DNA from: Laetmonice hystrix
Taxonomy: Eukaryota
Direction: 5' to 3'
NCBI GenBank assembly: GCA_965235115.1
Contig: OZ249444.1
Coordinates: 6,200,001-6,264,000 of the forward strand
Length of the DNA: 64,000 bases
Within the stretch, counting starts at the first letter, position 1; the number at the start of each line of letters is the position of its first letter. This document shows positions 2,014 to 56,898 of this stretch, piece by piece. The translations under genes were made by a program, and so were the position numbers. The notes under the pieces were generated by a model. The model saw nothing but the letters and a program-made list of their open reading frames with translations, ran no database searches and was not told where the DNA came from.

Positions 2014-2921
2014 TGCAGTCTCCTTAGACTAGAGGTGGTGGTTGAGTCACTTGATTTATGACACGACAAACACATGAACATTTTGAGGGTTTCCCAACAA
2101 TTTTGCATCATACAGTGTACATATGTAACTAGTTTTCGCGGTGAATGTTGCATGTAACTGATATACTTCACTGAGACGAGCTATATCACAGAAAGAAAAC
2201 ACATCCTTTTCCTGTGTCCTTATTTAGCTGTGTCGCAAAGTGTTGTCTGCCCGTGCATCGTGGTCATGGTTTTAGTTCTGTCGTCTTTCAACATTGCAGT
2301 TTTTATCAGTCATCAGTTTTAAACCTCCAGCAATAAACACAACAGGACAAAAGGCAACAGGACACTATACTACACCCAGTGAACAAATGTGGGCGTTACA
2401 AGGACATAAAAACAAGAATATGCGAATTTATGTGAACTAATAATGATCATTAATTACATGTGAAGATTACCTGAGTTGGCGACACCATCAACAGGTCCTA
2501 TATCGACCGTAGTCTCACGTGCCAGTCCCCTACGACAGACTCTGATCTTGTACGGAATGTTCGCGAATATTCTTGTTTCAGAAAATAATTCATTCACTCC
2601 ACCCAAAGAACAATGTGTTATTAATTTGCCAGGTATGGTCAGGATGTGTACCGCGTGATTTGAAAATTCTGGTATTCGGTTTGTAGACCTCGACAGGTGA
2701 TAGTGTCACAGTGTTAAACGGGGTGCTGTTTGCCAATTATTGAATTATGCTTCCCCTGAAAGAGGCCGACATCTACATGGATTGCCAAGTTTGCTTCATA
2801 CGTAAAATCTGTACCACCTCTTGACACTACCATCGGTGAAAGGTCTGCCTGAACTGATCATTTATGTTTATACGAAAGCAAACTGCAGTGTCAGTCAGGT
2901 TTTAAACCAGTCTGCCACACA

Positions 2922-3115
2922 ATGCTAAAGTGGGCATTATCGAAAATATGTAGAGCTCTCTCTAGACAAGCAAGCCAAGCTCCCGACGGCAGACAGACTG
3001 TATCACTGGGCCCCAGGCATCGATCACAGTACCCCCTACTTCACCCTCACCCACCTACCCCCTCTCCCGACAAAAAGAATGAAAAAGAGAAAAAACCTCC
3101 TCCTACCCCGCTCAG
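2922..3115 (+). CDS. Candidate alternative first exon MLKWALSKICRALSRQ...KKPPPTPLR
   Basis: ATG-initiated 64 codons ending CTC AG|gtgaac, phase 2. Confidence 0.45.
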
Positions 3116-5350: not shown

Positions 5351-8300
5351 GGGACCTTTATTTCGGGGCGACTTGGATTCCTTTCACACAGACAAGAAAC
5401 ATTGGGTAACAGGCTCCTTTGTTCATCCTCTGCCAATGGCCATCTTCAGTAATGGACACCATAATGTGGTAATTATGTCATTAGGTGAAGCAATTAATCC
5501 TTACATGGCGTCATGTCGTTTTATCCCACATTGTTGTGAAAGTGACACCAAAGAGTTCGGTTTGAATGTCGACACCAATTTCCTTGGCGGGTTTCCTTGG
5601 GTCTGTCCCAGAGAAGATGACATTTTCGGGCCTTCAGACAGTGTATCCAATCCATCCGTAACTTTCATTACATTGCTGGTTGCTCCTACATGTTCCTGGA
5701 GGAGGCCAGAAGAGGAAACTCAGGGAAGAGCGTTGTATCTAGGTTTTAATCTTAATATCTGTTAATTATCTTCCACCATCAGGGAGAGTCATTAGTACTC
5801 GTGGTGCCGAGTGGTTATACGTATCTACAATTTGTTGTTGCGGACATTCTGACAGGCCAGCCATGAAATGATGATAAGGAGATAACTGTCACCGATTTAC
5901 ACAGTTGTTATCGTGGTTAAGACAACATGGGAATTATCAGTCAGTCAGCCAAACTATAGATGTGATGGGGAGGAAAACATGTGAGTTAATTAATGCCTGG
6001 AGGCTCCAGAATCTGGTTACAATCTACCACAAAATCAACCATGAGTCGGTTGATGAAACGGGATCGTCTTGTCGGACTGGTAAGAGGACTCCGATTTGAA
6101 TTAAATGGAATTTTAACGGGGGAGGTAGTTTATAAAATGTAGTAGTCTCAAAAAAGAAGAGGCTAAGAAAATGTATGGGGAAATAGTGATGCGGTTATAT
6201 TTTATTTGTTGGTTCCAGGTGTATATAGCAGGGAAAGGATTTTTGCTCTAGTTTAATGAGGGAAGTGGTTGGGATAAGGGGGGAGTCGTTTTGGTCTGGA
6301 GGCAGATGTTTCTGGAGTCCAAGTGTAAAATGTGTTTTAGTTCAGAGTGGTGTTTTGTCCGTAGGTTGTGTAGTGTCGGGCTCATCGTGTCTGTAAACCT
6401 CATTAGGCGGGGGTTGGGAACTTGGGTCAACATCCTTCCTGTGACCAGTCAGCTAGAGGTGTGGGGTGGACCATAAATGAGCGCTTTTATAGGGGTTTTT
6501 ATAAAGGGGTTTGAATAGGAAGGCAGCTGAGCCCCCTCACCCACCCCCATCAGGTAGCGAGTGTGGTATGTAGGCTGATGACGGAATGTCATGCAAAGTG
6601 ACTGAGGGTGTGTTGGTTGTGGCGGGCGGCCCCTCGGGGCGAGGGTCTTGGTATCCACACAACCAGGGCCTGGGGGGTATGCTGGCTGACCCTCCCCCAC
6701 AGCACCAGACGAGAACCAGCAGGCGGTTAACGACTTAGCTTTGTTTAAATGGGTGTTATTATTTAGGAGCAAAAATGTGAAGTACGTCTTTGACTAGGGC
6801 GATAATGGGGGTATTTACAGAGTTGTATTAGGTTGTTTGGGGTGGGAATTATGGAGTGGCTTGACTTGTTGGGTCATGGCCAGGTGTTTCTATACGGGAT
6901 CAAACTGTGCGTGTGCTACTATGTGTACAGTCAACACACCAGGGTGTTGGTTTTAGCCACGTCCCCCGTCACTACAGCCCAGGTGGAATAAATTCCTGTT
7001 CAATGATAACTGTTCATATACCGGTAACTGCCAATACATGTACATGAAAACAACCCTTCCCACTGTATTTGTGTGAAGGATTCATTAATATAAGAACAAA
7101 TCAAGGACTGTTTTAATCCAGCGAACAACAAAAAACTTCTTAGTGGATCTACAAGATCAGTGAAATAATTTATATTCCTAGCCGGGGCGGGGGATATAGT
7201 GAGGATTATCATCGAAAGTGTCCGGAGCGGTGTATGAACTAGCCATAAATAACAGCTGCGGTTATATTCTAGCCGAAACATGGCCCAGTGATGAGAGATT
7301 AAGGCCAAGACCTCCTCCCTCAAGGGGAAACACACCATTTATTTACTCTTTATTGCAAAGCGTTGCCAAATTTAGACTTCGGGCTTGTTACAGTTGGACG
7401 TCAGAACAAGTCAGTTATTGGAATAAAAAATATTTGGAGTATCCAGGGGCAGACATGACCGTAACAAGGGCTCAGTCAGGATATTTGGACGCATTTAGAT
7501 TGAGAGAAAACACGAGTTGAGTTTGCAAGCATCAGCAAATGTTATTTTGTGCTGTTTCGCCCATATTTATCGAGCCTTCTATTTCGAATGCCGTTTGTCA
7601 AACATCTAATTTAAGATGTTTAATTGCAGTTGTTAGAAGATGTTTATTTTCCACAACCAATTAGGATCTAATCTGCAGGTATTAGAAATGGTTGGTGTGT
7701 CTTGGTAGATATTTTAATTGGTTTTGCTGCAGCAGAGTCCTTGATGTTATGACGTGGCAGGAGCATGGATTTAGATGGAGAGGAGCTACTGCCGATCAAA
7801 CCAAAGTATACCTTTATTGTCGACGTTATTTGTTAGATGAATTGATCGATTTAATAAATTTAATATTATACATGTACATTTGAAAGCAAAAATGTTGATG
7901 CGGGAAATTGTGAGCAAATTCTGATGAACAAATTGCGTCATGAAGTACAAAGTAACGTGTGTTATAATCGGGTTCCTAGGTGTAGTGGATTGTTTTTCCT
8001 GAATGTTGAATGCAAGCTGATGTTCAAATGAATATTTTACTCCGGATGTTGTGGAATGACTTGAGATAATACGTGAGGATTGGGCTCACACAGCGTGACT
8101 GTTTGTTCATGGTTACTGAGCCGTGACAGTCGAAAGTTGTCAGGTAAACGACCGAGTTAACTGCTAACAGATTGCATTGAGGGGACAGAAACTGGGAAGT
8201 ACCTCGGGAGTCGATTAGGGAACCCCTGGCTGTCTGCCAATCCGACCGTGACCGTCTCCCTTACAATAGGGGTGGTTGTGAATCAGGCATTGGCACAGGT

Positions 8301-10432: not shown

Positions 10433-11274
10433 GCCACAGTTAATACAACCAGGATTACAGTCGTACGTGGTCTGGTGGTCAGTGTGGTCATCACCAGACC
10501 CGAGTGTGGATAAAGGATGACCAGCCTTGACCACATCCTATAGGAACGGATGGTGACTGAGAGCAATACCGTGGGAGCAGGGTGAAACTGTACATCATCA
10601 AACTGAAGTGTGGTCGTCGTCCCATGATCAGGCTGACGCTGAGCAGTGGGGTGTGATAAGAACGTAGCTCCCACCATCTTGTACCAGGGGGTCAGTTAGT
10701 TACCCCCACCCCCACGCCCGATTCCACCCCGCCTCTGCCTGCGAGGTTTATGTTTTCCCAGTGGCACCAGCTGGGGATTTCTTTGAACCAGCCGCCCCAT
10801 GATATTGTTGCCATCATCCACGTGTCCCTGTGGAGTATCGTCGCTGGGCTGTGAACCGGCTCCTGGCGCTGGTGTCGGAGTCTCGTGTCGGGACCGTCCG
10901 TGGTCAGCGCAGGCAGTGGCAATCCTAGCACGCTTATTACACACGTCCGTCATCACCATAAATGTCCACCGGCCAAATTGACATCGGTCATTGTTATTAG
11001 TGCCGCCAGCAATGCCATCAAATTTTGATGTGTTTTCGTGGTCTGTGGTTGTTGAAATACCTGCAAATCTGTTATATCTGAGGCAGCCATTCCTTATATG
11101 CAACGAAGCTGAAAATTCCTCAGCACAAAATCTACTTTGAATATGGGTCTAGTGCATTGCATGAGTGCTGTAAAATTTCAAAAGAAAAATTCATTTACAT
11201 GTAGTTGCGCCCATACCAGTGGTGTGTTTGCCGGAGTAAAAGTGACATAGGGAAAAAATTGTACGTAGTTTAAA

Positions 11275-14200
11275 ATGTATGAGGCGAGTGACTTGAGTCG
11301 ACATGCTGGGGGTCAGAATAACAGTTTTTCTGATGCAAATAGCAGCAGTCACGACATACGAAACTGTGGCTACAGTTCAGGGTATGCCCCCAGTGGGATG
11401 AATCGTTACGGGGTAACCTCTGAGGGCGCCGGTGAAGGCAGGATGAGGGCGGGGAGGCCAGGAGAGGGCGGCCCGGGTAGGATGGAGCACCCGGCCGTAT
11501 ACAGCCGGCCCCCGCTGCCACTGCCCCACCAGAGACAGGACCCTCTGCCATATCAGTACCCCAGTCCCCACGGCAAGAACACATACAATGGTAACTACAG
11601 TTACCACGACCAACCCCCAAACGGACCACTCCCGAGCCCTGTCCACTCCGGAGGGTACCCTGGAGGTCGCGGCAGGCCAGACGGTCACATAGACGATAGT
11701 CACAGGTGTAGTAGTCAACCGGCGCCGTCGCCCAGGGCCCAGAGGTCGGACCAGTATCATGGCTCGCCCGGTAAGACCGCTGCCGCCTACCGGCCGACTC
11801 AGCTCCCATACCGCGGGGACGGAGGTCCTCCACCCAGGGTCCCAGTGAGGCCAAGCGAGGAGATGTACAGCCCAGGGATCCCACCCGGCATTCCGAGCCC
11901 GTCTCCCCGACAGTTCCAGTCCCAAGGCGAGCCGCAATATTGGCCACTCACAGGTCGGGCATCCAGTCCACATGGTAGCAATAGCAGACTTTCAGGGCCA
12001 TCTACACCAAGTCCACACGGCAGCATGACCAGGCTCTCCAACCCACCCAGCCCAATGGGTAGTGGTCATAGACTCCCCAGCCCAGCCAATGCCAGCTTGG
12101 CTTACCACCCGTCCAGTCCACACAGGCCTGTTGCTGCCTTAGGAAGTCCACACAGTCCATCAGGACACGGTAACCAGTTCGCCAACGTGTTCAATTCAGT
12201 TTCAGCTGTTCGGAGACCAGCAAGCCCAGCTGGGTCCCAGAACAGTTCTCACAGTAGCCAACACCAAGGACTCACATCTAGTAGCCCAGTGGGTTCACCC
12301 TCACAAAGACTAGTGAACCAACACGTAGAGGAATCCCACGGCCCTTCCATGACACCAGGCCCATGGTACAACCCTCAGAGTGCCCCTGGCCCATACGCCC
12401 TCAGCCAGGGAAGGTCTCCACGAGGGCCCCTACCAGGAGGACAAAGTCCCTCCGAGGGGCTTTACGCGCGAGTCGGTCAATACGAGGGACAATACCGGTT
12501 GAATGCTGACTCCCCGTCTGCCCAGAGCAGATCGCCGAGGTCGCCCAATGGCGTCTACATCCACGAAGGAAATTTCCCGCGGACCCCAAGTCACCCAGAC
12601 TTACGGGAAGGTTCATTTCGTGCTGCTCCCAGTCAGTCGAGTCTGGCTGGCCCTGGGCTCCCTGGGCTCCCTGGGCAACCTGCAAGAAGTGGAAGCCTAT
12701 CTAGTCTCAGCAGGGACCACACGAGCCCGTCTGCTGGTCAGTCGGGCTTTCCTGATGGACCTTACCATCGATTACCCAACTCACGGGATCTTCAGGGCAG
12801 ACAGTTCGACATCTCTTCAAGTCAGTCCAACCTTCGCGATAATCAGTACAGACAACAACCTGCTAGTTACCAAGGCAATAGCAGCGGAGTAACCAACGGG
12901 TCAGGGGCTCCGGAGGGACTCTGTAATGTAAGTCCAGGACAGGTGAAAGATTTGCATAATGCAGGAAACTGTCATCCTAACAGAGCACCAAATTACTCTG
13001 ATGTAAAAGGACAAAAGATTAAAGGTGAGCGTAGTCCCAATGACATGAACTTTAGCAGAGTACCGAGCAATTATAGTCTCGATGAAGGACATTATATTAA
13101 TAGAGCTCTAGGCCACCCCGGTCTCAATGAAGGACAATACAGTAGAGCACCAAGCCATCCTAGTCTCAATGAAGGACATTATGTTAGAGCTCCAAGCCAT
13201 CCTGGTCTCAATGAAGGACATTATAGGAGAGCGCCAAGCCATTCTAGTCTCAGTGAAGGACACTATGATAGAGAATCAAGCCATCCTAATCTCGGCGAAG
13301 GATATTATAGTAGGACACCAAACCATCCTAGTCTAAATGAAGTACAGTATAGTAGAGCACCAAGTAATTCAAATCTCAGTGGAGAACAGTTCAGCAAAGC
13401 ACCAAGTCATCCTAGTCTATACGAAGGACAACATAGTAGGGCACCGAGCCATCTCAGTCCAACTGATCAATTAAATAGAGCGCCAAGCCAACCAAGTTTC
13501 AACAAAGGTCAGATAAGTAGAGCGCCGGGTCATGATAAAAGAACTTTAAGCCAATCTAATGTAACTGACGAACACCTTAACAGAACAGCTAGTTATACAA
13601 CTTTGAATGAAGGACATTCCCAACAGAATATTGAAATTTTTCATGACCTCGGGGGCGGTCCAAATGAGCAGTACGAAGGAGTCACAAATGGTGTCGACAC
13701 TTCTGAGGTCCCACATCGGCCACCCGGAGACGAGAGTGAGCCACTCGGAGATAGAAACTCAGCCACATCTGACGTAGCTGTGGCGTCCAGCGACTTGTAC
13801 AGACCTCAGTCTCGCAACACTCCGGAGGGTGGCGCCAGTGTGTCAGATCCCCAAGGAAGACCCCCTGTCGTCAGATCTAGAGCGGGAAGTCCCTCTGGGC
13901 CACCGCCGCCTCCTCCATCACATCCTCCAGTCACAGTGCCCGTGTTGTCACAGCAACGTCAGGAGACGATCGAGGTGGACGCTCCGCCCGCTGTGCCACC
14001 TCTCCCGTCCGCCTCCTCCTCCTGCCGCTCGGCGCCGCTGCACACTCAGCACAAGCCTCCAGTGCCGCCGCCCTATTCGTATCAGGCCAAGCAGAGACAG
14101 AAGCAGCCGTCGCTGCTGTCGTATCCAACAAGCTCGCAGGTACACTCAGCAGAATCCGTCCCGCCACCGCCGCTGTCTCAGCCGTCGCGGCACGGCACGT

Positions 14201-14288
14201 CGCTCGCACCACGTCAGTCGGTCAGCAGCCATCAACGCGAGCGACCAGCCGCCAGGTACAATCGACACTACTACTACGATACTAACAG
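11275..14288 (+). CDS. Giant candidate alternative first exon, 1004-aa Ser/Pro/Gly/His-rich disordered region
   Basis: aaaATG start, 3-kb uninterrupted ORF with diverged internal protein repeats, donor AAC AG|gtacgt in phase 2. The ORF otherwise runs on to a stop at 14370. Confidence 0.75.
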
Positions 14289-14796
14289 GTACGTAACCAC
14301 AGCAGCGGCGGCATCCAGCCGCTTTCCCAAGCTGCTGACGTTGATATTTCAGGGGTATTTTCAGCAATGAGGGGGAGGGAGGGGGGGAGCCACCCACCTG
14401 AGTTAGGAGCCGAGGATTGAGTGGGTTGATATCGCTGCTGTTGAAGCAGCTGGTAGAGAGAGATGTTGGTCCGGGATCGCTGAGACTGCCTCAGTGTACA
14501 TGGGTTAAAATGTATACCGGCCACACACAGTGCCAGGCGTGGATGGATACACAGTGGGGAGCTAGACCACTTGGTGTGTATTGCCTTAATTAGCCCTGAC
14601 AGATGTGTGTTAATTGTATGCAATTGTTCTAATTGCTACAAATTCAATTTGGATGATCCTGGAGGAATATAGCTGTGTGAATACCGGTAGCGGCAAAGCA
14701 AGATTCGTGGCTCTACTGCTGAAGCTACTCCTGCAGGTGTTGGCCTAGGAAACAGCCGGGTGGTGGATTAAGCTGTTGAATGGCTGTTGCGGCCTG

Positions 14797-15176
14797 ATGC
14801 AGTGTATTGGAGGCTGTGGTTATCGCACGGACCCATCCTTGAGTCCTGTGGCGGGTGTGGGCCCCACCACTGACGGAGACTGGGAGTCTAAGCCCCTCGG
14901 TATACGGACATCCACCAGCGCTGCCGTTAGTAACACCGTCACTGAAGTCGGTGGCACAACCTCATCAGTATCTGATGTCCTCGCGATTGCTGGCCCTGAC
15001 GACCGAGGTGGTGCTGGTGGTGCTGATGGCACCACTGGCGGTGCAAGGGCTCCTGCTCCTTGTGCTGGAGTAGCAGGACCATCGACTGCACCCCTCACCA
15101 GCCAAGGGTTCAACCCCGAACCCTCCTCCTCCTCCTACTCGACCGTCCACGTTGAGACCAGCAACCCCATCCTCAG
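14797..15176 (+). CDS. Candidate alternative first exon MQCIGGCGYRTDPS...ETSNPILR
   Basis: 126 codons ending CTC AG|gtaggt, phase 2. Confidence 0.5.
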
Positions 15177-16072
15177 GTAGGTAGGTGCTCCTCAGCACCT
15201 GTCTCCTGACACCGGTTCACAGGCAAGGTCAAGTCCATTTTAATTAGCTCCGATTTCATAACATCAGCTTCACCTTGCTTAGTGACCGGGATCTAACAGT
15301 GTTTTCCTAAGCTGCATTGCACACAAGTCATGATAAGACAGTTATGTCAGCAAGAACTGAAAGCACCTGGAACTTTGTACATTCGATCACATTATGTATT
15401 AACAGATGTATTCCCCAGATAGGAATGAACGTTGAGGATTTGAAAAGTTCTGTTGTGAATGATCATTGTATTTGACAAGGCTAAATATTACTCCTTGACA
15501 TTGAAAGGTAGCGGTCCATACAGGCAGGGGTGTATATTTGCTGCCAGTGTGACTGGGTGCGAATCTAGAGTGTAGTGATAAAAAACGAACCCACGACTCT
15601 GTGTTGAATCGGATATATTTGGAGATTCCACAAACAGACGCTCAGGTACTGGCGGTATATATGTCAGCAGTATGTGCACAAGGTAACACGGGTAAAAAGT
15701 TTCTGCGGGGTGATAAAGGTGCTCAGTGCATCACGCCTCGACGTCTGGGGATTTTTACATGCATGGCTCTCCGAACTGATCAGTGATTGGAGTTATATCG
15801 AGACTTATCAAAGTAAAATATCAATATTTTGAATCCTAGATTCGATCCTCAGTTTATTGTGATTACCTGAAACCAACGCTGAAACTTGCAGGAACATTGA
15901 TCGTATGAAAACATGTTGTGTCTGCATTTTAATTGCGGGTCGATATAACAGTGTCTAAATTTGAGGTGATAAATTTGGAGTACGTGCAAGCTATGTGGTG
16001 GGTCAGCAGTCTGTTGTGACGTCAAGATTATCAAAAGGGCGAGGTGGTTCTGTCAGACGGTGTCAGTGAGTC

Positions 16073-16920
16073 TGGGAGTGTGGGAGGTGTAACACCTTTT
16101 GTCTGTGTGGGTATGGGAGGGTGGGAGGTGTAACACCTGTAATAAGTGTGGGTATGGGAGTGTGGGAGGTGTAACACCTGTAATTAGTGTGGCTATGGGA
16201 GTGCAGGGAGTGTAACACCTGTAATTAGTGTGGCTATGGGAGTGCAGGAGGTGTAACACCTGTAGTGTGGCTATGGGAATGTAGCAGGTACCTGTAGTCA
16301 GTGTGAGTATGGGAGTGTGGCTGGTGAGTATTGAAGATGTAACACCTGTAATCAGTATGGGTATTGGAGGTGAAACACCTGTAATCAGTGTGGGTATTGG
16401 AGTTGTAACACCTGTAATCAGTGTGGGTATTGGAGATGTAACACCTGTAATCAGTGTGGGTATTGGGGGTGTAACACCTGTAATCAGTGTGGGTATTGGA
16501 GGTGTAACACCTGCAATCAGTGTGGGTATTGGAGGTGTAACACCTGTAATCAGTGTGGGTATTGGAGGTGTAACACTTGTAATCAGTGTGGGTATTGGAG
16601 GGGTAACACCTGTAATCAGTGTGGGTATTGGAGGGGTAACACCTGTAATCAGTGTGGGTATTGGAGGGGTAACACCTGTAATCAGTGTGGGTATTGGAGG
16701 TGTAACACCTGTGATCAGTGTGGGTATTGGAGGTGTAACACCTGTAATCAGTGTGGGTATTGGAGGTGTAACACCTGTAATCAGTGTGGGTATTGGAGGT
16801 GTAACACCTGTAATCAGTGTGGGTATTGGAGGTGTAACACCTGTAATCAGTGTGGGTATTGGAGGTGTAACACCTGTTTTCAATGTGGGTATTGGAGGTG
16901 TAACACCTGTAATCAATGTG
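16073..16920. repeat. 33-bp minisatellite, about 25 copies, degenerate at the left end
   Basis: ggaggtgtaacacctgtaatcagtgtgggtatt. Confidence 0.95.
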
Positions 16921-17526
16921 GGTAAAAAGACTGCGCGTGTATTTGGTGGTGGTTAGGAGATCGGGTGTCGTGTTGTGGACAGACACACGGACGATTCAGG
17001 GACGGCCAGACTATGTGCTAAAGGTGATCGCTTCAGGCCTGAAGGGTAGCCATGGCAACTCATTACTGCCTCAGTTCGCAGCTTTTTAAAGCCATTAGAG
17101 TGACATTGATTTAAAACAGGGAGTATGGAATGTCGACATGATAATAGCACGTGCCTTTCTGTATTTATTGCCATAGTGCCAGGTCTGGAATTTACAATAA
17201 AAAGGGCCAGCTTTACATCGTCAGGTTAGTACCGTAACAAATTGGAGTCGGGTGGAAAATATGGTGGCCGCAAAATTGCATGCAGTGATTTCATAATTAA
17301 AAAGTGTTATTTAGGGGATAAAAATCATGATAAAAAGTAGGAAAAGATATAAAACTGCGAGAGAAACACCTGTTGGGCCCGTTGGGGACAGTCGGTCGGC
17401 CTAGGGGACCAAGGGCACTTAATGACGTGATTTTTCTTTTATATATATATATGTACATGTAGGTGTATATAGTTTAACTCCTCGTAAATGTTTTTACCAG
17501 GGAGCCTGGTGAGCATTAGGTTCTGA

Positions 17527-17620: not shown

Positions 17621-17822
17621 ATGATGAGAAAGGTATGATGTGGTTGGGGAAGAATTAATGTTGTGTGAGGCAGACAGTTACTGTCATTGTTTCAATAGTT
17701 GATCAAGACCTGTCAGCAAGCAGCGGGTCCCGATGTCATATTGATTGGTGATTACGGCTGGAAGTTTGTTGATTGTGTCTCCTCCCGGTCTGAATAAATA
17801 CATGGTGGTGTTAGACTGACTC

Positions 17823-19220
17823 CGCCATCAGTGGAGGGAGGGGTGAGGGTGAGGGTGAGCTTACGCTGGCTCCGGGCCGCATGTCGAGTAACTCTGCCAT
17901 CAGTGGAGGGACCATGGAATGGGGTGAGGGCGAGCTTACACCGGCTCCGAGCCCCATCAGTGGAGGGACCATGGAATGGGGTGAGGGTGAGCTTACACTG
18001 GTTCCGGGCCCCATCAGTGGAGGGACCATGGGATGGGGTGAGGGTGAGCTTACACTGGTTCCGGGCCCCATCAGTGGAGGGACCATGGGATGGGGTGAGG
18101 GTGAGCTTACACTGGCTCTGGGCCCCATGTCGAGTAACTCCGCCATCAGTGGAGGGACCATGGGATGGGGTGAGGGTGAACTTACACTGGCTCCGAGCCC
18201 CATCAGTGGAGGGACCATGGAATGGGGTGAGGGTGAGCTTACACTGGTTCCGGGCCCCATCAGTGGAGGGACCATGGAATGGGGTCAGGGTGAGCTTACA
18301 CTGGTTGCGGGCCCCATCAGTGGAGGGACCATGGGATGGGGTGAGGGTGAGCTTACACTGGTTCCGGGCCCCATCAGTGGAGGGACCATGGAATGGGGTG
18401 AGGGTGAGCTTACACTGGTTGCGGGCCCCATCAGTGGAGGGACCATGGGATGGGGTGAGGGTGAGCTTACACTGGTTGCGGGCCCCATCAGTGGAGGGAC
18501 CATGGAATGGGGTGAGGGTGAGCTTACACTGGTTGCGGGCCCCATCAGTGGAGGGACCATGGGATGGGGTGAGGGTGAGGTTACACTGGCTCCGGGTCCC
18601 ATCAGTGGAGGGACGGGTCCCATCAGTGGAGGGACCATGGAATGGGGTGAGGGTGAGCTTACACTGGTTCCGGGTCCCATCAGTGGAGGGACCATGGAAT
18701 GGGGTGAGGGTGAGCTTACACTGGTTCCGGGCCCCATCAGTGGAGGGACCAAGGGATGGGGTGAGGGTGAGCTTACACTGGTTCCGGGTCCCATCAGTGG
18801 AGGGACCATGGGATGGGTGAGGGTGAGCTTACACTGGTTCCGGGTCCCATCAGTGGAGGGACGGGTCCCAGCAGTGGAGGGACGGGTCCCATCAGTGGAG
18901 GGACGGGTCCCATCAGTGGAGGGACCATGGGATGGGGTGAGGGTGAGCTTACACTGGCTCCGGGTCCCATCAGTGGAGGGACGGGTCCCATCAGTGGAGG
19001 GACGGGTCCCATCAGTGGAGGGACGGGTCCCATCAGTGGAGGGACCATGGGATGGGGTGAGGGTGAGCTTACACTGGCTCCGGGTCCCATCAGTGGAGGG
19101 ACCATGGGATGGGGTGAGGGTGAGCTTACACCGGCTCCGGGTCCCATCAGTGGAGGGACGGGTCCCATCAGTGGAGGGACGGGTCCCATCAGTGGAGGGA
19201 CCATGGGATGGGGTGAGGGT
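17823..19220. repeat. Compound minisatellite (57-bp unit plus 21-bp subunit)
   Basis: ccatcagtggagggaccatgggatggggtgagggtgagcttacactggttccgggcc, with ccatcagtggagggacgggtc sub-repeats in the right half. Confidence 0.95.
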
Positions 19221-20635
19221 AAGCGTGCAATGTGCACAGTTTCTAGACCTGACACAGAGACTCTGTGCCCGCTCATCAATACAGGACCCATTGCCACCAG
19301 GTTCATCAATGCTCCGCTCGTTAACGAGACAATGTTGTGCAATATCGGGCCCTCTCATAGCTTGCCATCCTTGCAGCTGACGCCGGCCCAATAATTACTG
19401 GGACCAAACCTTTTGGCCTTTAATTTCACGGAGCCGTCAGAAGTTAGATTAACTGCGTTGGTTTGAAATGATGAAACAGTCAGTGGGCCCGGTGTCCGAC
19501 CTATTGGCAGGCTGCTGTTATGGATCAGCCGGTGTTTTTCTACCCGATTCCGTAGTAGCCTGAATGTCTACCTGGCCGTGTAGATTTAGGTTTCATACAG
19601 GTAATCACTCTACCTGTACCCATACCTGTATATTCCCAATCCAGGTGATCATGGAGATATAACGAGTTGGATCTGATATCATGGACAGACCTGCCAACCA
19701 CTACGAAAAAATATCGTATATTTGCTATGATTTGGTATTGAAGATACACCAGTATGAAATTTGTGACAACAGGCCTATATTTTACGAAAAATTCATATTT
19801 CTCGGATAATTCTTGAAACATACTTTCTTGTCTGGCCAACCGAGTGCAGTTAGAACAGATATTTCAGATTTTAACGCGACTGTGAATATGTGAAGTTGTA
19901 CTTTAATAATTAAAGTTTATCTATTTTCTTGTTTTTATGCAGAAATATGTTAATACTAATTTTTATAACAAAATATAAATTTTTAAAAAGAGTTTTACTG
20001 TAGGCTGTAGCAAGTTGGCAAGTCTGCATGGGTTGTCGGGTGGGGTGCTCTTGAGTGTTCTTGGGTGATTTCACCTTTTGGAGGGGAGAGTTGAAGGAGA
20101 AGAAATAGCGGAGGATGGCTGCTGGAATCCCATTACTGCGGTTTCACAAGACGGTAATTTATTAGTGTGATTACAGACTGGCTGAAGGCAGTTCGGTTTA
20201 TTTTAAAATGTTAAATGAACCAGACACTAATCTGCAGCGGAGGAAAGGCAGGTGGTCACACAACTAGAACATGAGATGGATAATAGTGGGTTAGCATTGC
20301 TCTCGTCAGAATCAGACCATCTGATGTCTAATCTGTTCGACTGGGTCTTCAGTCTTTGAGGTGGAAGTACATCAGCTTCTATTGGATCGAGACAAAAACC
20401 TGATTGAGTGAGCGTACTGAATTAAAAAGCGCAATATTGGCGTTTGCTGAAGAGAAGGGTTTTTTAATGCCCCATAAGTATATTATGATAGCATGCCTAT
20501 CTAACGGAGTTGGATTCAACACGCAAGATCTCATAGTCAGCACCCTGCCATGTAGATTAATTGTCCCAGACAGGTCTCTGGCACGTACGGTACAAAATTA
20601 TGCATGGTCGCCACGTTTGAAAAAATGGCCTAAAT

Positions 20636-21420
20636 AGGTTTTGGCATGTTTTGGGAGGGTAATAATTGAATACATTAAAAAGGTTTTGGCATGTTTTTGT
20701 GAGGGTAATAATGGAATACATTAAATAGGTTTTGGCATGTTTTTGTGAGGGTAATAATTAAATACATTGAATAGGTTTTGGCATGTTTTTGTGAGGGTAA
20801 TAATTGAATACATTAAATACGTTTTGGCATGTTTTTGTCAGGGTAATAATTGAATACATTAATTACGTTTTGGCATGTTTTTGTAAGGGCAATAATTGAA
20901 TACATTAAATACGTTTTGGCATGTTTTTGGGAGGGTGATAATTGAATACATTAAATACGTTTTGGCATGTTTTTGTGAGGGTAATAATTGAATACATTAA
21001 ATACGTTTTGGCATGTTTTGTGAGGGTGATAATTGAATACATTAAATACGTTTTGGCATGTTTTGTGAGGGTGATAATTGAATACATTAAATACGTTTTG
21101 GCATGTTTTGGGAGGGTAATAATTGAATACATTAAATACGTTTTGGCATGTTTTGGGAGGGTAATAATTGAATACATTAAATACGTTTTGGCATGTTTTG
21201 GGAGGGTAATAATTGAATACATTAAATACGTTTTGTCATGTTTTTGTGAGTTTTGGCATGTTTTGGGAGGGTAATAATTGAATACATTAAATATGTTTTA
21301 GCATGTTTTTGTGAGTTTTGGCATGTTTTGGGAGGGTAATAATTGAATACATTAAATACGTTTTAGCATGTTTTTGTGAGTTTTGGCATGTTTTGGGAGG
21401 GTAATAATTGTATACATTAA
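20636..21420. repeat. 45-46-bp AT-rich minisatellite, about 16 copies
   Basis: ttttggcatgttttgggagggtaataattgaatacattaaatacg. Confidence 0.95.
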
Positions 21421-31425: not shown

Positions 31426-31664
31426 ATGTTGTGTTTGCCCCCTCCCGTCCTCCCAGCGGCCCGGGTCAGCGGCCCACATGATGAAGCCAGTGGAGTCAGG
31501 AAGAGACGTTGTAAAGTAATCCCCTGTCTACGTCAGTGCAAGACCTGGCCGCCCTGGAGCATCCCAACCCGGAGCAGGAGCCGCCGCCCTATCCCCGTCC
31601 TACAGTATACCTACGTCTGTGACCCACTTTGTGAGCAGAGCTCCTCCAGTAAGTTGGGGTGTAG
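31426..31664 (+). CDS. Candidate exon MLCLPPP...KLGCR (or internal exon from acceptor 31457; alternative donor 31648)
   Basis: Open frame ending TGT AG|gtacgt (phase 2), strong pyrimidine tract before 31457, second donor CCA|gtaagt. Structure is ambiguous. Confidence 0.35.
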
Positions 31665-35131: not shown

Positions 35132-35799
35132 CACCCAGAAGTTTGAATCGTCACTTCTGATGACTTAATGTGTCCTGGTCAGCCACTAGGTTGTTACTGA
35201 CCCAGTTATTGCCAGTCGGCAGGACGGAGGCTGATTTTGTTATCAGATTACCACGGTATCTGTTTGAATAGAAGAGGTAATAGGGAGCCATGGTATCCGC
35301 CAGGACCTATTACTGTATGCAACAAATTCCGAGCGTCTACTGTTCATTGCTGGTGCCTCTCGAATGTTTGGCTGTCAATATAATAATGAGGTCCACCATA
35401 ATATTTGTCAATGTCAATGGTACAGTTTATATTAATGATAACTTGATATTAGTCTGGAATTAATGTCATTTAAAGATAGTTTTGAGCATTTTTCATCTAG
35501 GATGTTTCTGTGTGAATAATGTAGGAAATCCTGGGTTAAAAATGAGAGCTCTCACGAGCTGCCTGTCTGGCTCGCTTGTTTATTTCTGGGTCCTTTGTTC
35601 AGAAAATCCCACCTAAGGCTGAACATGTACGCGACTTTCTAATACAAAAACTATGTGGGATCTAGTAGCAGAGAATGAACGTGTTCCTGTCATACGGTTC
35701 CCGCTGGGAAATCTATCCAACTTAACTCGCTCCGTATTGTAATCCACACTGAGGGATTTAGTGGGAGAGACCGGCTGGGACGGCTTTGGAGGCAGTGGT

Positions 35800-36260
35800 G
35801 GGGGTTAGGTGGGTAATGATGGGGGTTGGGTGGGTGATGATGGGGATTGGGAAGGTGGTGATGGGGTTGGGTGGGTGGTGATGGGGGTTAGGTGGGTAAT
35901 GATGGGGGTTGGGAAGGTGGTGATGGGGATTGGGTGGGTGGTGATGGGGGTTGGGTAGGTGGTGATGGGGTTGGGTGGGTGGTGATGGGGTGGGTAATGA
36001 TGGGGGTTGGGTGGTTGGTGATGGGGGTTGGGTGGTTGGTGATGGGGTGGGTGATGATTGGGGTTGGGTGGTTAGTGATGGGGTGGGTAATGATGGGGGT
36101 TGGGTGGTTGGTGATGGGGGTTGGGTGGTTGGTGATGGGGTGGGTGATGATTGGGGTTGGGTGGTTAGTGATGGGGTGGGTAATGATGGGGGTTGGGTGG
36201 TTGGTGATGGGGGTTGGGTGGTTAGTGATGGGGTGGGTGATGATTGGGGTTGGGTGGATA
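35800..36260. repeat. G-rich degenerate minisatellite (21-bp and higher-order units), G-quadruplex-prone
   Basis: gatgggggttgggtggttggt variants. Confidence 0.9.
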
Positions 36261-37008
36261 GTGATTTGGTGATACTTGTAGAGAGACCAGGGGACATGAG
36301 CCTGATGACGACATTCACCACATTCCTAACGAGCGTAGCCACCCCGTGGTTGTCATAGCGACCTCCTTCCATGGCGCGAGGTTGTTGGTCGAGGAGAGCC
36401 GGGGTGGATTGGATCATGTCATGTAGGACAGGCTCATCATGTCGGCCCACGTTATCTACGATTGTAATAGACCTGTCATGTACAGATCAGGCCGATCGCG
36501 GGCCTAGTAATGCTCTATACAGCCCCGCCCTGTTGGTGTCCGACAGGGTCGGGTGTGCAGGCCACAAAACGGTACATTCCATTAGAAGCCAGCGCCGGGG
36601 TCGGAAGGTCACACGTAGGATTAAATTGCTGTCAACCCACAACTTGACCCCCATAAATACACCCCTTGTACGTATACAAGACACCAACTATCCATACCCA
36701 GGCACCCAAACCAAGGTGTATGGTACTCGAGCCCACTTGGATAAACCTGGTTGGGTTTACCATAGTCTGTCAAATAGTCATCTTTGTTTTCAGGTTGCTA
36801 AGAGAGGCTCGCAGCTATTGGAGTTGGTGACGATACATCGGAACCTCGTCTTGACATCATTTATAGCATAGTTTCACCTCAGAAATAGGTCAAGGCAATT
36901 GTTGGATAAACGCCAATGGTATTGTCCCTTTTGACCCACATTGATGATCCGAGATGCTATATATAAGACATTGTCCAATAGTGAGAGTTTGCATTGTTGT
37001 ACTTGCAG

Positions 37009-37165
37009 AGACCCACGGAAGATTCTGCTAAAGAAAGGCACCACCGGGCTGGGCTTCAACATCGTGGGCGGGGAGGATGGGGAGGGAATCTTCATCTCGT
37101 TCATCCTGGCTGGAGGACCCGCCGACTTGAGCGGGGAACTCCACCGCGGCGACCAGCTCCTGTCG
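37009..37165 (+). CDS. dlg1: dlg exon, PDZ3 N-half (R)[52 protein letters not shown]
   Basis: Acceptor ttgcag|A, donor TCG|gtaagt, 157 nt, phase 2 to 0, PDZ GLGF motif. Confidence 0.96.
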
Positions 37166-52820: not shown

Positions 52821-52923
52821 GTGAACGGTATCGACCTCCGTGATGCCACTCACGAGCAGGCCGCTGCAGCACTCAAAGGAGCCGGAGATACGGTTGAGAT
52901 CGTCGCCCAGTACAAACCAGAAG
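52821..52923 (+). CDS. dlg1: dlg exon, PDZ3 C-half [34 protein letters not shown]
   Basis: ttttag|GTG...GAA G|gtataa, 103 nt, phase 0 to 1; continues the PDZ3 frame. Confidence 0.95.
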
Positions 52924-53587
52924 GTATAACAAACCCAGCAGTAGAACTTATAATGTTCCAGCAAGTACAAAAAGCGATGATGTACTAGTAGTCAATGAAG
53001 TCCCTTTTTTTTGTTAGCAAACAAAAGCATTCATTACTGAGGGCAAATGACGATTTTTCTGGCGATTTGTTTTTATCAGGACGAATATTTGTCTGCAAAA
53101 GGCATAAATTTGCATGCGTACACAATTTTTTTTAAACTTTTGAACTTCTTTATATATTTTAAAAACTTTAAGTGGCAGATATATTGGTAAAGAATTTTGA
53201 TTTTTTTGGGAGGAAGAGGTAGCCCACATTAAGAAGAAAGAACAAAAACAACAAAAGCCAAAGGTTTTCTCCTAAAAGGTCAAAAAAGCCAAAGTAGTTG
53301 TTAGTAGATTTCGGGAGAATTGAACCTCTCTGGGTCCGTAAACCTGCGTGAGAATGCCACTTCAGCTGCCCTTCGACCCGACACCTGGGATGTAACTATA
53401 CACTGTAGATATATATAAGCAAGACAATGTGTCGTTCCCCCAGTAGGGTTGCTATATGTCAGACGTGTAGAACTGGTGATGGTACCTAGTAGTTGAACCC
53501 TAACTACATGTATAGGACGGCATTGTGACCCCTGACCCTATTATTACCGAAGTCAGGTCTTGTCTTTGTATTCTGTTATAAGAATGT

Positions 53588-53716
53588 AGACAATATGTAT
53601 GTCAGTAGACAATATGTATGTCAGTGGACAATATGTATGTCAGTAGACAATATGTTTGTCAGTAGATAATATGTATGTCAGTAGACAATATGTATGTCAG
53701 TAGACAATATGTATGG
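53588..53716. repeat. 20-bp tandem repeat, about 6 copies
   Basis: agacaatatgtatgtcagt-type unit. Confidence 0.9.
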
Positions 53717-54154
53717 CTTGTCTCCTTGATACGGACATTAGCACCTTGATTGTATATTATATTTTTTCTGCGTCACAAAGGTGAATAGCCTCATGTAGAC
53801 GTACATATGTAACATTGTTGCACTTTTTCTCTCCTCTTTTAAATTCATTTCTTTTCATTTTCAATCCTTCTTACGTACAGTTTAGTAATTTATTTTGGGG
53901 TCTTTCTATATTGCATGGTGAACTTATTTTCACGTCTTCGATCGTTATGTTTTCCTTAGTATGGACTGGCCTCTGGTTTTCGTTGCATGCTGCCAAAGTC
54001 AACGATTTATGCCCAAAATTTTGTTCCGTAGTCGTAATTGTATAGTGCATATATGGTGTACTTATTATCACAATAGAAGGTAGATGTAATGATTACTGTA
54101 ATTGGTAGATAATTATTCGTCCACAGTGGATAACGGGTATTTTTATCTGTGCAG

Positions 54155-54205
54155 CATACAACCGCTTTGAGGCGAAGATCCATGACCTCCGCGAGGAGAT
54201 GAGGG
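54155..54205 (+). CDS. dlg1: Candidate 51-nt cassette exon, diverged duplicate of the alpha3 helix: AYNRFEAKIHDLREEMR
   Basis: gtgcag|CA TAC AAC CGC...AGG G|gtacct, phase 1 to 1. Five synonymous differences from exon 54311. Donor is weak. Confidence 0.6.
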
Positions 54206-54310
54206 GTACCTATACATTTACATAATATTCAAATTAAGCGTGGTCCATTTGCATGCCATTGAAGATACGTGTATTAAGGAGAACGGTTCTCATTTTGATG
54301 CTCTTTGCAG

Positions 54311-54413
54311 AGTACAACCGATTTGAGTCGAAGATACACGATCTCCGCGAACAGATGATGAACACAAGTACTGGAAGCCTGCGCACGACGCAGAAACGTA
54401 CACTCTACGTCAG
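54311..54413 (+). CDS. dlg1: dlg exon, PDZ3 alpha3 helix and linker [35 protein letters not shown]
   Basis: tttgcag|AG...AG|gtacga, 103 nt, phase 1 to 2; matches the DLG linker. Confidence 0.95.
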
Positions 54414-54427
54414 GTACGAATCGCCAG

Positions 54428-54461
54428 CCAATGGCAGCAAACCACTGGTTGCCATGGCGAC
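54428..54461. promoter_or_regulatory. CCAAT plus RFX X-box-like motif just after the linker exon
   Basis: gccaatgg near 54428 and GTTGCCATGGCGAC at 54448-54461. Confidence 0.4.
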
Positions 54462-54757
54462 CACGGGCCCGTCAAACTGGCAGAAACTTACAACCACAAC
54501 TTGCTCAACCAGTCACCATCTATAGAAATAATAGTCTCAAGAATTAAGATTGCCTTTAGTTATGGATATTGCATGTTGGGTGGGAGGCTCCATTGCTTTA
54601 TGTCATAATATTGGCTCGAGACGCAGCCGAGAGCTAATATATATTGTAGGGCACGAAGCATGGAGCGTTACCAACGAATACAACATCTACGTTTAGCACT
54701 CTGTTAGAATTAAAGATTACATAAGGCCTTTAGCAAAGTTACATTATTAATTTGCAG

Positions 54758-54934
54758 GGCTCTCTTTGACTACGACCCGACCAAGGACAGCGGGCTGCCG
54801 AGTAAGGGATTGGCGTTCAAATATGGCGACATTTTGCATGTGACAAATGCCAGCGACGATGAGTGGTGGCAAGCACGAAAACTGCTGCCCGAGGGCGAGG
54901 ATGAGGGACTGGCCATCATCCCCAGCAAACGGAG
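54758..54934 (+). CDS. dlg1: dlg exon, SH3 [59 protein letters not shown]
   Basis: tttgcag|G...GGAG|gtaaaa, 177 nt, phase 2 to 2; ALFDY and WW SH3 motifs. Confidence 0.96.
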
Positions 54935-55265
54935 GTAAAAATGATTGGTTCGGATCGACAAGTATCTGAACATTTTGTGGAAATTACATCGGCATTGGGG
55001 TATTACGTCTTCAACGTAGGGTTAATACATGCAGGGTTTTCTAAAGGATTGGGGGGGGGGTGTCTTTGGGGTGGTTTTTTGGAAGATTTTTGAAAAATCA
55101 TCCAGAAATCTTTTGGGGAGTAGCTGATTTTTGGAGTGAGTCTACCCCAAAACGCGCTTGTAGCAAACCCTGACATGTCGATGAGTGTGTGTTTGCTAAT
55201 ATGGTATTATAACATGAAGGATTCGTTGAGTGTAGGTGTAACTCATTTGTCTGTATATGTTCCAG

Positions 55266-55350
55266 GGTTGAAAGAAAAGAACGAGCACGTCTCAAAAATG
55301 TCAAGTTCCATGGCAAAGGGGCGGGCACAGAGAAAGGTGGACCCATTGAT
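55266..55350 (+). CDS. dlg1: dlg exon, HOOK helix VERKERARLKNVKFHGKGAGTEKGGPID
   Basis: ttccag|G...GAT|gtaagt, 85 nt, phase 2 to 0. Confidence 0.93.
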
Positions 55351-55750
55351 GTAAGTTGATGATAGTACGTGGCTAAGGTTGTAGCTACTCGCAGTGTCTA
55401 AGGTGTCATGTATGCAATCATGGTGGAAAATAAGGTATGACGTAAAACACATAGGTGTGTTGCTTAGTGACTGGCAAACTGTTTGTTGCTGGTGAGGGTA
55501 GTATTGACGTAAGTATGTGTACCCCCACCAAAAAAACAAAGCTCTGGACGTTGACGTTTCCCCCTTGACACCCCCCCCCCCGCCCGATTCATGATATAAA
55601 GTTTTTACATTTGCTGTGAAAATATGTTGTCAAAAGAAGTTGTTAAAAATCACAAAGAGAATCCCTTTGTCTGGTATAATGTTGTATTTGAAGTACCGGT
55701 ACATTTTGTATTTATAAGAAATCCTCAGTGAGATTGGTTTGTTATTGCAG

Positions 55751-55859
55751 CCCATGGCCACAGATAAAAGGAAGAAGAACTTTTCGTTCAGTCGGAAGTT
55801 CCCGTTCATGAAGAGTAAGGACCAGAGTGGCAGTGAGGACGCTATCAGTGCTGACGAAC
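55751..55859 (+). CDS. dlg1: dlg exon, I3-like insert PMATDKRKKNFSFSRKFPFMKSKDQSGSEDAISADE
   Basis: ttgcag|CCC...GAA C|gtaagt, 109 nt, phase 0 to 1; DKRKKN..FSRKFPF resembles the DLG1 I3 (protein 4.1-binding) insert. Confidence 0.92.
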
Positions 55860-56136
55860 GTAAGTATACTCAAATTGATTGAACTAAAAAATCTAATGTT
55901 CAAAGGCAAGTAGGTTTACAAAGCCGTGGACATGCCTCAACTTGGTAGTGTTGTTTATAAGTGTATAACTACAGACATGAAGGAACACTTGGAAGGGATT
56001 TTCTCTAAAAAAAAAAAGGGTATAATGCTTGAGTAAGTTGCAATAGTTAGAAATAGGGACTTGAGAGTAAAACCTATATCTTTTCTATATTGCATATTAA
56101 AACACGAATTTCACCAACCTTTCTATATATTATTAG

Positions 56137-56163
56137 CTTGGACCTCAGTAGCGATGAATCCCA
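56137..56163 (+). CDS. dlg1: Candidate HOOK microexon, 27, 15 or 12 nt depending on acceptor (start 56137, 56149 or 56152)
   Basis: Donor CCCA|gtgagt. All three possible AG acceptors give 3n lengths with no stop in phase 1 (PWTSVAMNP, LAMNP, PMNP). Confidence 0.55.
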
Positions 56164-56892: not shown

Positions 56893-56898
56893 TGGAGG
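56893..56898 (+). CDS. dlg1: Candidate 6-nt microexon TGGAGG (copy 1)
   Basis: tttaacttccattttcctgtaacag|TGGAGG|gtgagt: branch-like tttaac, pyrimidine tract, strong donor, frame-preserving. Confidence 0.65.

Follow-up and report, generated by a model that had tools for sequence, protein, structure and literature searches.

A 3-kb coding exon inside an annelid Dlg gene, conserved in a second species, as a candidate alternative N-terminus joined to PDZ3

The window analysed here, a stretch of 64,000 nucleotides from Laetmonice hystrix, covers part of a DLG-subfamily MAGUK gene that encodes L27, three PDZ domains, SH3 and a guanylate-kinase-like domain (GK), in that order and on one strand. L27_1 lies at C10:5971364, the PDZ1 and PDZ2 exons were located in L001, and PDZ2b is at C10:6197900-6198030. 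These L27, PDZ1 and PDZ2 exons are upstream of a 3-kb open reading frame (ORF), hereafter the giant exon, and the exons of PDZ3, SH3 and GK follow downstream on the same strand, with PDZ3b, SH3, HOOK and GK at 52821-62898 (tblastx to loci with PDZ and Guanylate_kin Pfam ORFs). The mapped domain exons place the ORF inside Dlg, between the PDZ2 and PDZ3 exons, in agreement with the first-pass annotation of this DNA, which had made it part of a Dlg isoform. The first PDZ3 exon is 94% identical to its counterparts in two other annelid Dlg loci, L002 and L003, and its intron position recurs in many invertebrate genomes.

The giant ORF is uninterrupted for 1031 codons (window 11275-14370, plus strand, 1031 aa). 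The other long ORFs of the window are either minisatellite read-throughs or at most 230 aa in length, leaving this one, as noted at first pass, the sole long ORF that is not of minisatellite origin. A genome search found a copy number of one and no paralogue. The earlier description of a single 3-kb exon of 1004 codons that ends at a donor is borne out by the coordinates of the ORF and of CAG/GTACGT (Table 1), as is the claim that this donor is in phase with PDZ3: the AG that follows codon 1004 and the A that opens the exon at 37009 rebuild the Arg of a conserved R-[DE]-P-R-K motif, here R-D-P-R-K. Phase agreement between donor and PDZ3, taken alone, has a chance of 1 in 3.

No homologue had been recognised at first pass, a statement now partly overturned by one clear orthologue, P0001, which is an uninterrupted ORF from a second species (E 1e-166). 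The alignment spans residues 1-1004 of the giant exon from the same first Met, with 41 in-frame gaps, and identity is 42% by BLASTP and 50% by MAFFT. All of the last 13 giant-exon residues are identical (13/13), and similarity ends two residues past the donor, Y-V, the residues that GTACGT would encode, being the last conserved in P0001. The read-through tails of the two species (27 versus 87-90 residues) gave no alignment with BLASTP.

Table 1. Features of the giant exon, its surroundings and the corresponding exon of two other annelid loci. Positions are those of the window unless a locus is named; a slash marks a splice boundary.
Feature	Position	Strand	Remarks
In-frame TAG	11266..11268	+	9 nt 5' of giant-exon ATG; read from sequence
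Giant coding exon	11275..14288	+	3014 nt = ATG start, 1004 codons + AG
Polyproline island YSRPPLPLPHQRQD (aa 76-89)	11500..11541	+	14/14 identical in P0001
PRVPVRP (aa 187-193)	11833..11853	+	Fits class II SH3-ligand pattern PxxPx[RK]; identical in P0001; predicted ligand
Tandem 14-residue array	13042..13560	+	~12 units, 42-nt period; consensus N-E-G-Q/H-Y-S-R-A-P-S-H-P-S-L
Candidate internal 3' splice site	13909..13931	+	Pyrimidine tract + CAG, exon start 13931; accepts phase 1, like PDZ2b donor
VPPPYSYQAKQRQ...LLSYPTS (aa 930-953), PPxY WW-ligand motif	14062..14133	+	13/13 + 7/7 identical in P0001
Terminal motif AARYNRHYYYDTN(R)	14248..14288	+	Identical in P0001; resembles other annelids' pre-PDZ3 exon end
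5' splice site GTACGT	14289..14294	+	CAG/GTACGT; GT at 14289-14290
ORF read-through tail	14295..14370	+	To ORF stop; unconserved, taken as intron
First PDZ3 exon	37009..37165	+	Phase-2 acceptor, pyrimidine-rich; starts A GAC CCA CGG AAG
Predicted spliced junction ...ACTAACAG/AGACCCACGG	14288/37009	+	
Pre-PDZ3 exon, other annelids	L002 ~2830-3061; L003 ~6000-6238		Phase-2 CAG/GTGAGA donor

Variation within the species can be set beside this divergence between species. In the second haplotype the ORF has no stop or frameshift and its only indel is one of 9 nt; indels of 1-2 nt are present outside it. The 27 listed SNPs in the ORF give a pN/pS of ~0.45, and among the tandem repeat units pN/pS is 0.48 in frame versus 0.95 in the other two frames. 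Judged from the full-length open frame of P0001, the shared Met, the frame kept between haplotypes and the low in-frame pN/pS, the giant ORF is a genuine conserved protein-coding exon and not a chance ORF; the conserved ORF and start Met and the similarity terminating at the donor uphold the first-pass annotation on this point. A non-functional or untranslated ORF, open merely through its composition or its repeats, would fit the low complexity, the absence of a known domain and the very narrow taxonomic range. However, each species has preserved over 1000 open codons in spite of ~50% residue divergence and the 41 alignment gaps, the tandem repeat takes up only ~500 nt of the 3-kb ORF, and an in-frame synonymous excess is seen in polymorphism and repeat units alike. 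We regard a non-functional ORF as highly improbable.

Searches for further homologues covered several collections. Word-index searches with the whole ORF and with the tail alone returned P0001 as the sole match, no other homologue was found among 1.84 billion cluster representatives (50% identity), and in the protein collections as a whole (5.8 billion clusters at 90% and the 1.84 billion representatives at 50%) the exon occurs only in one raw ORF call. A HMMER search with the full profile gave 143 matches, 142 of them confined to the 14-residue repeat zone; those examined were set aside as unrelated repeat proteins (NACHT, RhoGAP, ice-binding-like, and P0002, which has a 14-mer repeat of another kind). 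The best score in the ESM Atlas, 0.77, was uninformative, JGI metagenome contigs yielded neither a relative nor the exact spliced junction, and a Pfam scan of the ORF at E up to 1 yielded no family. The 443,710-bp contig of P0001, from ENA analysis ERZ26222911, carries none of the 120 best PDZ3-exon ORFs, and no giant-ORF homology was found upstream of PDZ3 at L002, L003 or L004 within the 4.6-10 kb at hand. In the literature, no paper was found that pairs 'discs large' with 'giant exon'.

The polypeptide encoded by the giant exon is rich in S, P, G, R, Q and H (S 15.8%, P 14.4%, G 10.2%, Q 6.2% and H 5.2%, with Y at 4.7%), and S, P and G together make up 40% of its residues. In the tandem array, for which Tandem Repeats Finder reports a period of 42, 9.5 copies and 71% matches, a Tyr recurs every 14 residues over ~12 units; the array of P0001 has ~16 units of 14 residues. 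These figures match the S/P/G/H/Q-rich leader with regular Tyr described at first pass. The PPPY ligand motif described there, KPPVPPPYSY, is present at aa 927-936. It holds the one PPPY of the exon, conserved in P0001 within a 13-residue identical block and predicted from the motif to be a WW ligand, and an RRPAS motif is also conserved between the two proteins. The leader had further been called disordered, and a prediction now run with AlphaFold2 (two-sequence alignment) agrees, with a mean pLDDT of 32.8, values under 50 at 991 of the 1004 positions and no DSSP elements; the product of the giant exon is predicted to be fully disordered.

The 3' end of the exon can be compared with the Dlg loci L002 and L003, which possess, 1.1-1.6 kb before PDZ3, a small exon under strong constraint. 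Between these two loci conservation falls right past the donor, and of the differences inside the exon the last 13, as read from the alignment, change no amino acid. The tail of this exon reads ...STYNCRYYPFYDFP(R), and against it the terminal motif of the giant exon ranks first among 15-residue windows (1/991, tied, and 1/1055). The tail thus finds its best match in the 15 residues that close the giant exon, which supports a donor that joins PDZ3, and the ancestral pre-PDZ3 exon probably survives as the giant exon's 3' end. Both exons are S/P/H/Y-rich, have a phase-2 ...AG/GT donor, end in Y-N-x-R-Y-Y-..-Y-D-x-x-(R) and are the last coding exon before PDZ3 (for the giant exon, as proposed here), whereas the exon of L002 and L003 has ~75-120 open codons and no giant ORF attached. 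The likeness is limited to ~15 residues and the whole-exon alignment is not significant. The whole L002 linker exon was also tried as a query for a homologue in the window and was rejected as not significant, the terminal motif alone standing out.

A different partner for the donor is conceivable if the ORF belongs to an independent gene nested on the same strand in a Dlg intron, either as a first exon spliced to non-Dlg exons in 14289-37008 or with an unspliced end past 14370. Such a gene would have its own ATG preceded by an in-frame stop and would lack homology to Dlg proteins and Pfam families, as is the case here, and the proposed link between the ORF and PDZ3 has been drawn from the sequence. 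Against this, the read-through tail is unconserved and is followed by no poly(A) hexamer (AATAAA or ATTAAA) in the 2.8 kb past the ORF stop, the 22.7 kb to PDZ3 contain no convincing coding exon, their ORFs all being derived from minisatellites, and the exon both ends like the Dlg pre-PDZ3 exon of other annelids and fits PDZ3 in phase. A nested gene is, on this evidence, distinctly unlikely.

At the 5' end, the giant exon has the marks of a first exon, with the in-frame TAG 9 nt before the ATG and an N-terminus conserved from residue 1. This TAG at 11266 closes the frame, and hence there is no in-frame entry from an exon spliced in just upstream; PDZ2b (phase 1) joined to the AG of the TAG would read G+TT and then a TAA stop. 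No promoter signal was evident: the CpG observed/expected ratio is unremarkable and indicates no island, and short upstream ATGs are found at 11143-11199. The sequencing runs found to contain this stretch, three from one sample, have even coverage across the exon and flanks with no joints, which identifies them as DNA; they supplied the haplotype data given above. The first-pass annotation had proposed the leader of a giant Dlg isoform: the coding exon and its frame with PDZ3 stand, and that the isoform would lack L27, PDZ1 and PDZ2 is suggested by the TAG and the conserved Met.

It is also necessary to consider how PDZ2 is joined to PDZ3 in the full-length transcript. The PDZ2b donor is of phase 1 and the PDZ3 acceptor of phase 2, so a linker exon with a length of 1 modulo 3 is needed, and none was found outside the ORF. 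Inside it, the candidate acceptor before 13931 has the second-best combined splice score among single exons of phase 1 in and phase 2 out over ~39 kb, and alone among those candidates it has a coding-like peptide. Other candidates for the canonical linker (31457-31664 and 15077-15176) were rejected, being not coding-like or having weak acceptors. The 358 nt of 13931-14288 may double as the canonical PDZ2-PDZ3 linker exon, and if this acceptor is used the 'leader' would have been added 5' to an old internal exon and would not be a wholly separate first exon. The same phase requirement could be satisfied further upstream, since the ORF holds 80 phase-compatible AGs: PDZ2b would then enter through a far-5' internal acceptor, for example 11846 or 12359, to give a PDZ2-PDZ3 linker of 600-800 residues with the ATG at 11275 unused, and Drosophila Dlg has a long low-complexity linker at this place. 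However, the far-5' acceptors score 0.4-2.1 versus 5.0 for 13931, and conservation with P0001 starts from residue 1 and includes the Met as well as strongly conserved islands at aa 76-139, 5' of all candidate acceptors scoring at least 0. This conserved 5' part would be unexplained if it were intron, and we consider a giant internal linker rather unlikely.

On balance we lean towards the giant exon as an alternative N-terminus of Dlg in a narrow annelid lineage, spliced to PDZ3 and without L27, PDZ1 and PDZ2. Transcription would start in the intron region separating PDZ2 from PDZ3, shortly before 11275, and translation would begin at the conserved ATG. The 3014-nt exon would then be spliced from the conserved CAG/GTACGT to the phase-2 acceptor at 37009, yielding a product of an estimated ~1,400-1,450 residues (the gene continues beyond the window) in which the 1004-residue disordered N-terminus precedes PDZ3-SH3-HOOK-GK. 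Such an exon probably arose when the small ancestral pre-PDZ3 exon was extended 5' by ~2.6 kb of novel coding sequence. The disordered arm would offer multivalent docking or clustering and bring other partners to PDZ3-SH3-GK, a role made likely by the conservation of PPPY, PxxPxR, RRPAS and the 12-16 Tyr units.

Several known systems resemble parts of this arrangement. Vertebrate DLG2/PSD-93 has several N-terminal variants from alternative promoters, including an eta isoform without any PDZ domain (PMC6389146), and novel coding first exons have been described for DLG2 (PMC5518101). As in that DLG-family gene, an internal first exon with its own ATG would here be spliced onto common exons with loss of L27/PDZ modules, but the annelid exon would add 1004 residues through a putative junction, twice the size of the attached domain part, and is lineage-restricted. 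To our knowledge, the vertebrate alternative first exons encode short unique N-termini. Giant-exon isoforms of neuronal scaffolds are represented by 480-kDa ankyrin-G and 440-kDa ankyrin-B, in which one very large exon adds a long unstructured segment to a modular scaffold; the likeness extends here to the size of the single coding exon, above 2.5 kb, and to the predicted disorder. Giant ankyrin exons are of the internal cassette type and are conserved throughout vertebrates, whereas the exon described here appears to be translation-initiating and domain-replacing and is found in two species only. PDZ_assoc (PF10600), the PDZ2-PDZ3 linker of vertebrate DLG1-4, shares the position immediately before R-[DE]-P-R-K, but the giant ORF does not match it or any other Pfam family at the threshold used. 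The PF10600 profile had no match in the whole genome and was likewise silent in control genomes.

Few organisers of cell polarity and synapses are as conserved as the Dlg/PSD-95 scaffolds, whose isoforms are known to diversify through short alternative N-termini. If real, the isoform would be an extreme one, its unique part being twice as large as the domains it shares. It would also be a datable large coding gain, by the 5' extension of an old exon; the giant exon is absent from the contigs at hand of two annelids with Dlg domain exons 94-100% identical. A fuller and more speculative scenario, to which we give only a small chance, is that in a small polychaete clade the short pre-PDZ3 linker exon became a 3-kb translation-initiating exon whose arm serves as a multivalent platform at junctions or synapses, possibly under phosphotyrosine control or able to form condensates. 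In this scenario ~900 residues of new coding sequence would have been born recently and traceably inside a highly conserved animal scaffold gene. For annotators the locus is a warning that exons of this giant disordered type get missed, and for the biology of the family a real isoform would amount to a natural experiment on PDZ3-SH3-GK tethered to a multivalent disordered arm.

The giant ORF is a single open reading frame of 1031 codons with an in-frame TAG 9 nt 5' of its ATG. A donor within it, CAG/GTACGT, delimits an exon of 3014 nt, or 1004 codons plus AG. The next recognisable Dlg exon, that of PDZ3 (best named matches in Capitella and Lottia), begins A GAC CCA CGG AAG behind a pyrimidine-rich acceptor, so that the AG and the first A of this exon would form Arg, followed by the start of PDZ3. 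The ORF is rich in S, P, G, R, Q and H, encodes 47 Tyr and KPPVPPPYSY, and contains a 42-nt tandem array that gives one Tyr per 14 residues. In all these particulars (long ORF, in-phase donor, composition, Tyr spacing, KPPVPPPYSY) the first-pass annotation was correct. It also called this the only long non-minisatellite ORF in the window; every other comparably long one is minisatellite-made, and no other non-minisatellite ORF comes close. Only one copy of the giant ORF occurs in the genome (627 Mb). From the flanking domain exons, its host is a Dlg gene spanning at least ~290 kb, in which it lies 3' of PDZ2 and 5' of PDZ3.

Features of the window (G000:C10:6200001-6264000, C10 being its genome contig) and of the Dlg loci L002 and L003 of two other annelids
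Feature	Position	Remarks
L27 exon	229 kb upstream of window start	same strand as giant ORF
PDZ1 and PDZ2 exons	2-6 kb upstream of window start	same strand as giant ORF
Short upstream ATGs	11143-11199	
Giant ORF	11275-14370 (+)	
Giant exon	11275-14288 (+)	donor at 14288/14289
CCCTGGGCT microrepeat	12651-12676	x2.9, in ORF, peptide GLPGLPG, polymorphic
Candidate internal exon	13931-14288	acceptor inside giant ORF, 22-nt pyrimidine tract + CAG; donor 14288 shared
Open segment	15077-15176	100 nt, phase 1 in/phase 2 out
Other-haplotype contig break	15212-15243	
Large minisatellite arrays	16053-16986, 17811-19394, 20905-21274, 35758-36450	intron between giant exon and PDZ3
PDZ3 exon	begins 37009	acceptor phase 2
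PDZ3b, SH3, HOOK and GK exons	52821-62898	same strand as giant ORF
Upstream duplicate and post-PDZ3 helix exon	54142-54216 and 54310-54414	
Pre-PDZ3 exon with in-frame ATG	L002 2857-3061; L003 6033-6238	
GTPase-encoding segment	L003 41-624	start of 16.5-kb contig

Judged by comparative evidence, the giant exon is protein-coding. The first-pass annotation had recognised no homologue; a word-index search with the giant ORF returned a single protein, the orthologue P0001 (E 1e-166), a raw ORF call of 1157 codons from a different ENA assembly, where its contig is 443 kb long. The two align from the first Met (MYE..DLS) through the last residue before the donor, with 42% identity by BLASTP and 50% by MAFFT, and despite 41 alignment gaps both keep more than 1000 open codons, with conserved islands along the entire length. 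The final 13 exon residues are identical in P0001, as are the next two, Y-V (GTACGT translated), beyond which similarity between the two is not detectable and the frames close at different distances; this pattern is expected where an exon and the 5' splice site that closes it are both conserved. In other-haplotype contigs of the same species the sole indel within the ORF is of 9 nt; outside the ORF there are indels of 1 and 2 nt. The 27 SNPs listed for the giant ORF give a pN/pS of ~0.45, and between repeat units pN/pS is 0.48 in its frame against 0.95 in the other two. Set beside this conservation, a non-functional ORF is very improbable, and it is probable that the exon is both coding and part of Dlg. 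One 9-nt unit of the CCCTGGGCT microrepeat is missing in all three runs of the other haplotype, an in-frame length variant.

The three sequencing runs covering the stretch are DNA, with even coverage, heterozygous bubbles and no joints. The donor phase of the giant exon fits PDZ3, a fit which alone has a chance of one in three, and an intron preceding R-[DE]-P-R-K is common to many invertebrate Dlg genes. In L002 and L003, closely related annelid loci whose Dlg domain exons are 94-100% identical to those of the window, an exon 1.1-1.6 kb 5' of PDZ3 ends CCCAG/GTGAGA in phase 2. Between these loci, nucleotide conservation falls sharply directly 3' of this donor, and the last 13 differences within the exon read as all synonymous. 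The exon ends in ...STYNCRYYPFYDFP(R), and when its tail was slid along the giant ORF the final 15-residue window was best (rank 1/991, tied), as it was along P0001 (rank 1/1055). Alignment of the whole pre-PDZ3 exon to the giant exon was not significant, and the tail likeness is therefore a motif-level argument, with some weight because the position is fixed and independently defined. The giant exon is likely both to be orthologous at its 3' end to the pre-PDZ3 exon of annelids and to be joined through its donor to PDZ3. An independent nested gene is quite unlikely; in the 22.7 kb from donor to PDZ3 there are minisatellites and a convincing coding exon was not found, and neither AATAAA nor ATTAAA occurs in the 2.8 kb 3' of the ORF's own stop, which speaks against a transcript end near 14370. 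In this intron the arrays give rise, on either strand and in several frames, to ORFs 100-500 codons long, which are not coding evidence; the majority of the other long ORFs of the window are explained by these arrays. In two of three runs, other-haplotype contigs break ~0.9 kb 3' of the giant exon, and the loose ends to either side of the break are unrelated, which suggests a structural difference (insertion or replacement). By tblastx, L002 and L003 matched the true helix exon that follows PDZ3 as well as its upstream duplicate, the latter at 68-72% identity.

Entry into the giant ORF is constrained by the TAG before its ATG, which makes in-frame reading from an exon spliced just upstream impossible; splicing of PDZ2b, the second PDZ2 exon, to the AG of this TAG leads to an immediate TAA. 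Conservation in P0001 takes in the Met and extends over the first 140 residues, with two blocks, of 14 and 13 residues, that are identical. Canonical (PDZ2-to-PDZ3) transcripts do require at least one linker exon, of length mod 3 = 1, since PDZ2b ends CCT G/GTGAGT in phase 1 and PDZ3 is entered in phase 2; that the ORF serves as a giant internal linker exon is unlikely. The simplest reading is an internal promoter, with a transcript that would begin upstream of 11275 and be translated from the 11275 ATG; spliced to PDZ3, it would yield a product without L27, PDZ1 and PDZ2, as first proposed. CpG o/e had ordinary values and gave no promoter signal, and the short upstream ATGs imply either that transcription starts no more than ~75 nt before the 11275 ATG or that the 5' UTR is spliced. 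We lean slightly towards this ATG-initiated isoform spliced to PDZ3; the first-pass interpretation is supported in part, as to a conserved coding exon within Dlg in phase with PDZ3.

The linker search took in all candidates from PDZ2b to PDZ3 with phase 1 in and phase 2 out, and the 3' part of the giant exon was the only well-scoring one with a coding-like peptide. This 119-residue tail is 52-62% identical between the two species, against 16-32% in the preceding 150 residues. The better conservation and the candidate acceptor lead to a dual-use reading, in which the exon may be internal in canonical transcripts and 5'-extended in the giant isoform. Against dual use, the acceptor region is a 17-residue gap in P0001, and among the runs listed for the stretch there is no RNA run containing even the tail. 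The open segment further downstream, with an S/P-rich peptide, a good donor (score 6.1) and a weak acceptor, is a second, weaker linker candidate.

In L002 and L003 no giant ORF is attached to the pre-PDZ3 exon, where the frame is open for 94-121 codons only, and a profile search gave no matches in their assemblies; the 2.6-kb extension thus looks like a lineage-specific gain. The ~60 nt just 5' of the in-frame ATG of their pre-PDZ3 exon (M-T-R-V/A-P-T-S-R-Q...) are 100% conserved, and the exon might be an alternative first coding exon of a short PDZ3-SH3-GK isoform. The L003 contig starts with an apparent bacterial-type GTPase (P-loop GRSNAGKSS, read as EngB-like) adjoining a retroelement endonuclease and an Impact_N ORF on the opposite strand, and may be chimeric, symbiont sequence or a transferred fragment.

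A literature search found no paper pairing 'discs large' with 'giant exon'. In ankyrin giant-exon isoforms a single huge exon encodes a disordered segment, and the likeness is limited to this. In vertebrate DLG2, alternative promoters and first exons alter the N-terminus, and one isoform is without any PDZ domain (PMC6389146; PMC5518101). The giant exon is proposed to change the N-terminus in the same way; unlike the DLG2 variants, its unique part is 1004 residues long, lineage-restricted and repeat-bearing.

AlphaFold2, with an alignment of two sequences, gave the product a mean pLDDT of 32.8 and no secondary structure, in keeping with the disordered leader first described. Pfam gave no match at E up to 1, and the product was judged distinct from the vertebrate PDZ_assoc linker. 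P0001 was the only true relative found by HMMER among 1.84 billion representatives; the other 142 matches had their best match within the repeat zone, and those examined were unrelated repeat proteins. P0002 (635 aa), an unrelated protein from the cluster-representative search with ~20 tandem 14-residue units (LPDEPNLMEGELST), shares the 14-residue period and P..P.L.EG spacing with the repeat of the giant exon, probably by convergence. Conserved in both species are YSRPPLPLPHQRQD, GYPGGRGRPDGHI, GEPQYWP, RRPASPA, VYIHEGNFPR.PSHPD and AARYNRHYYYDTN, together with PRVPVRP, which fits PxxPx[RK], VPPPYSYQAKQRQ, which contains PPxY, and the 14-mer array (~12 units in the giant ORF, ~16 in P0001). 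From these motifs we infer that the product would be PDZ3-SH3-GK bearing a disordered arm for multivalent docking, which would offer ligands for WW and SH3 domains along with repeated motifs centred on Tyr.
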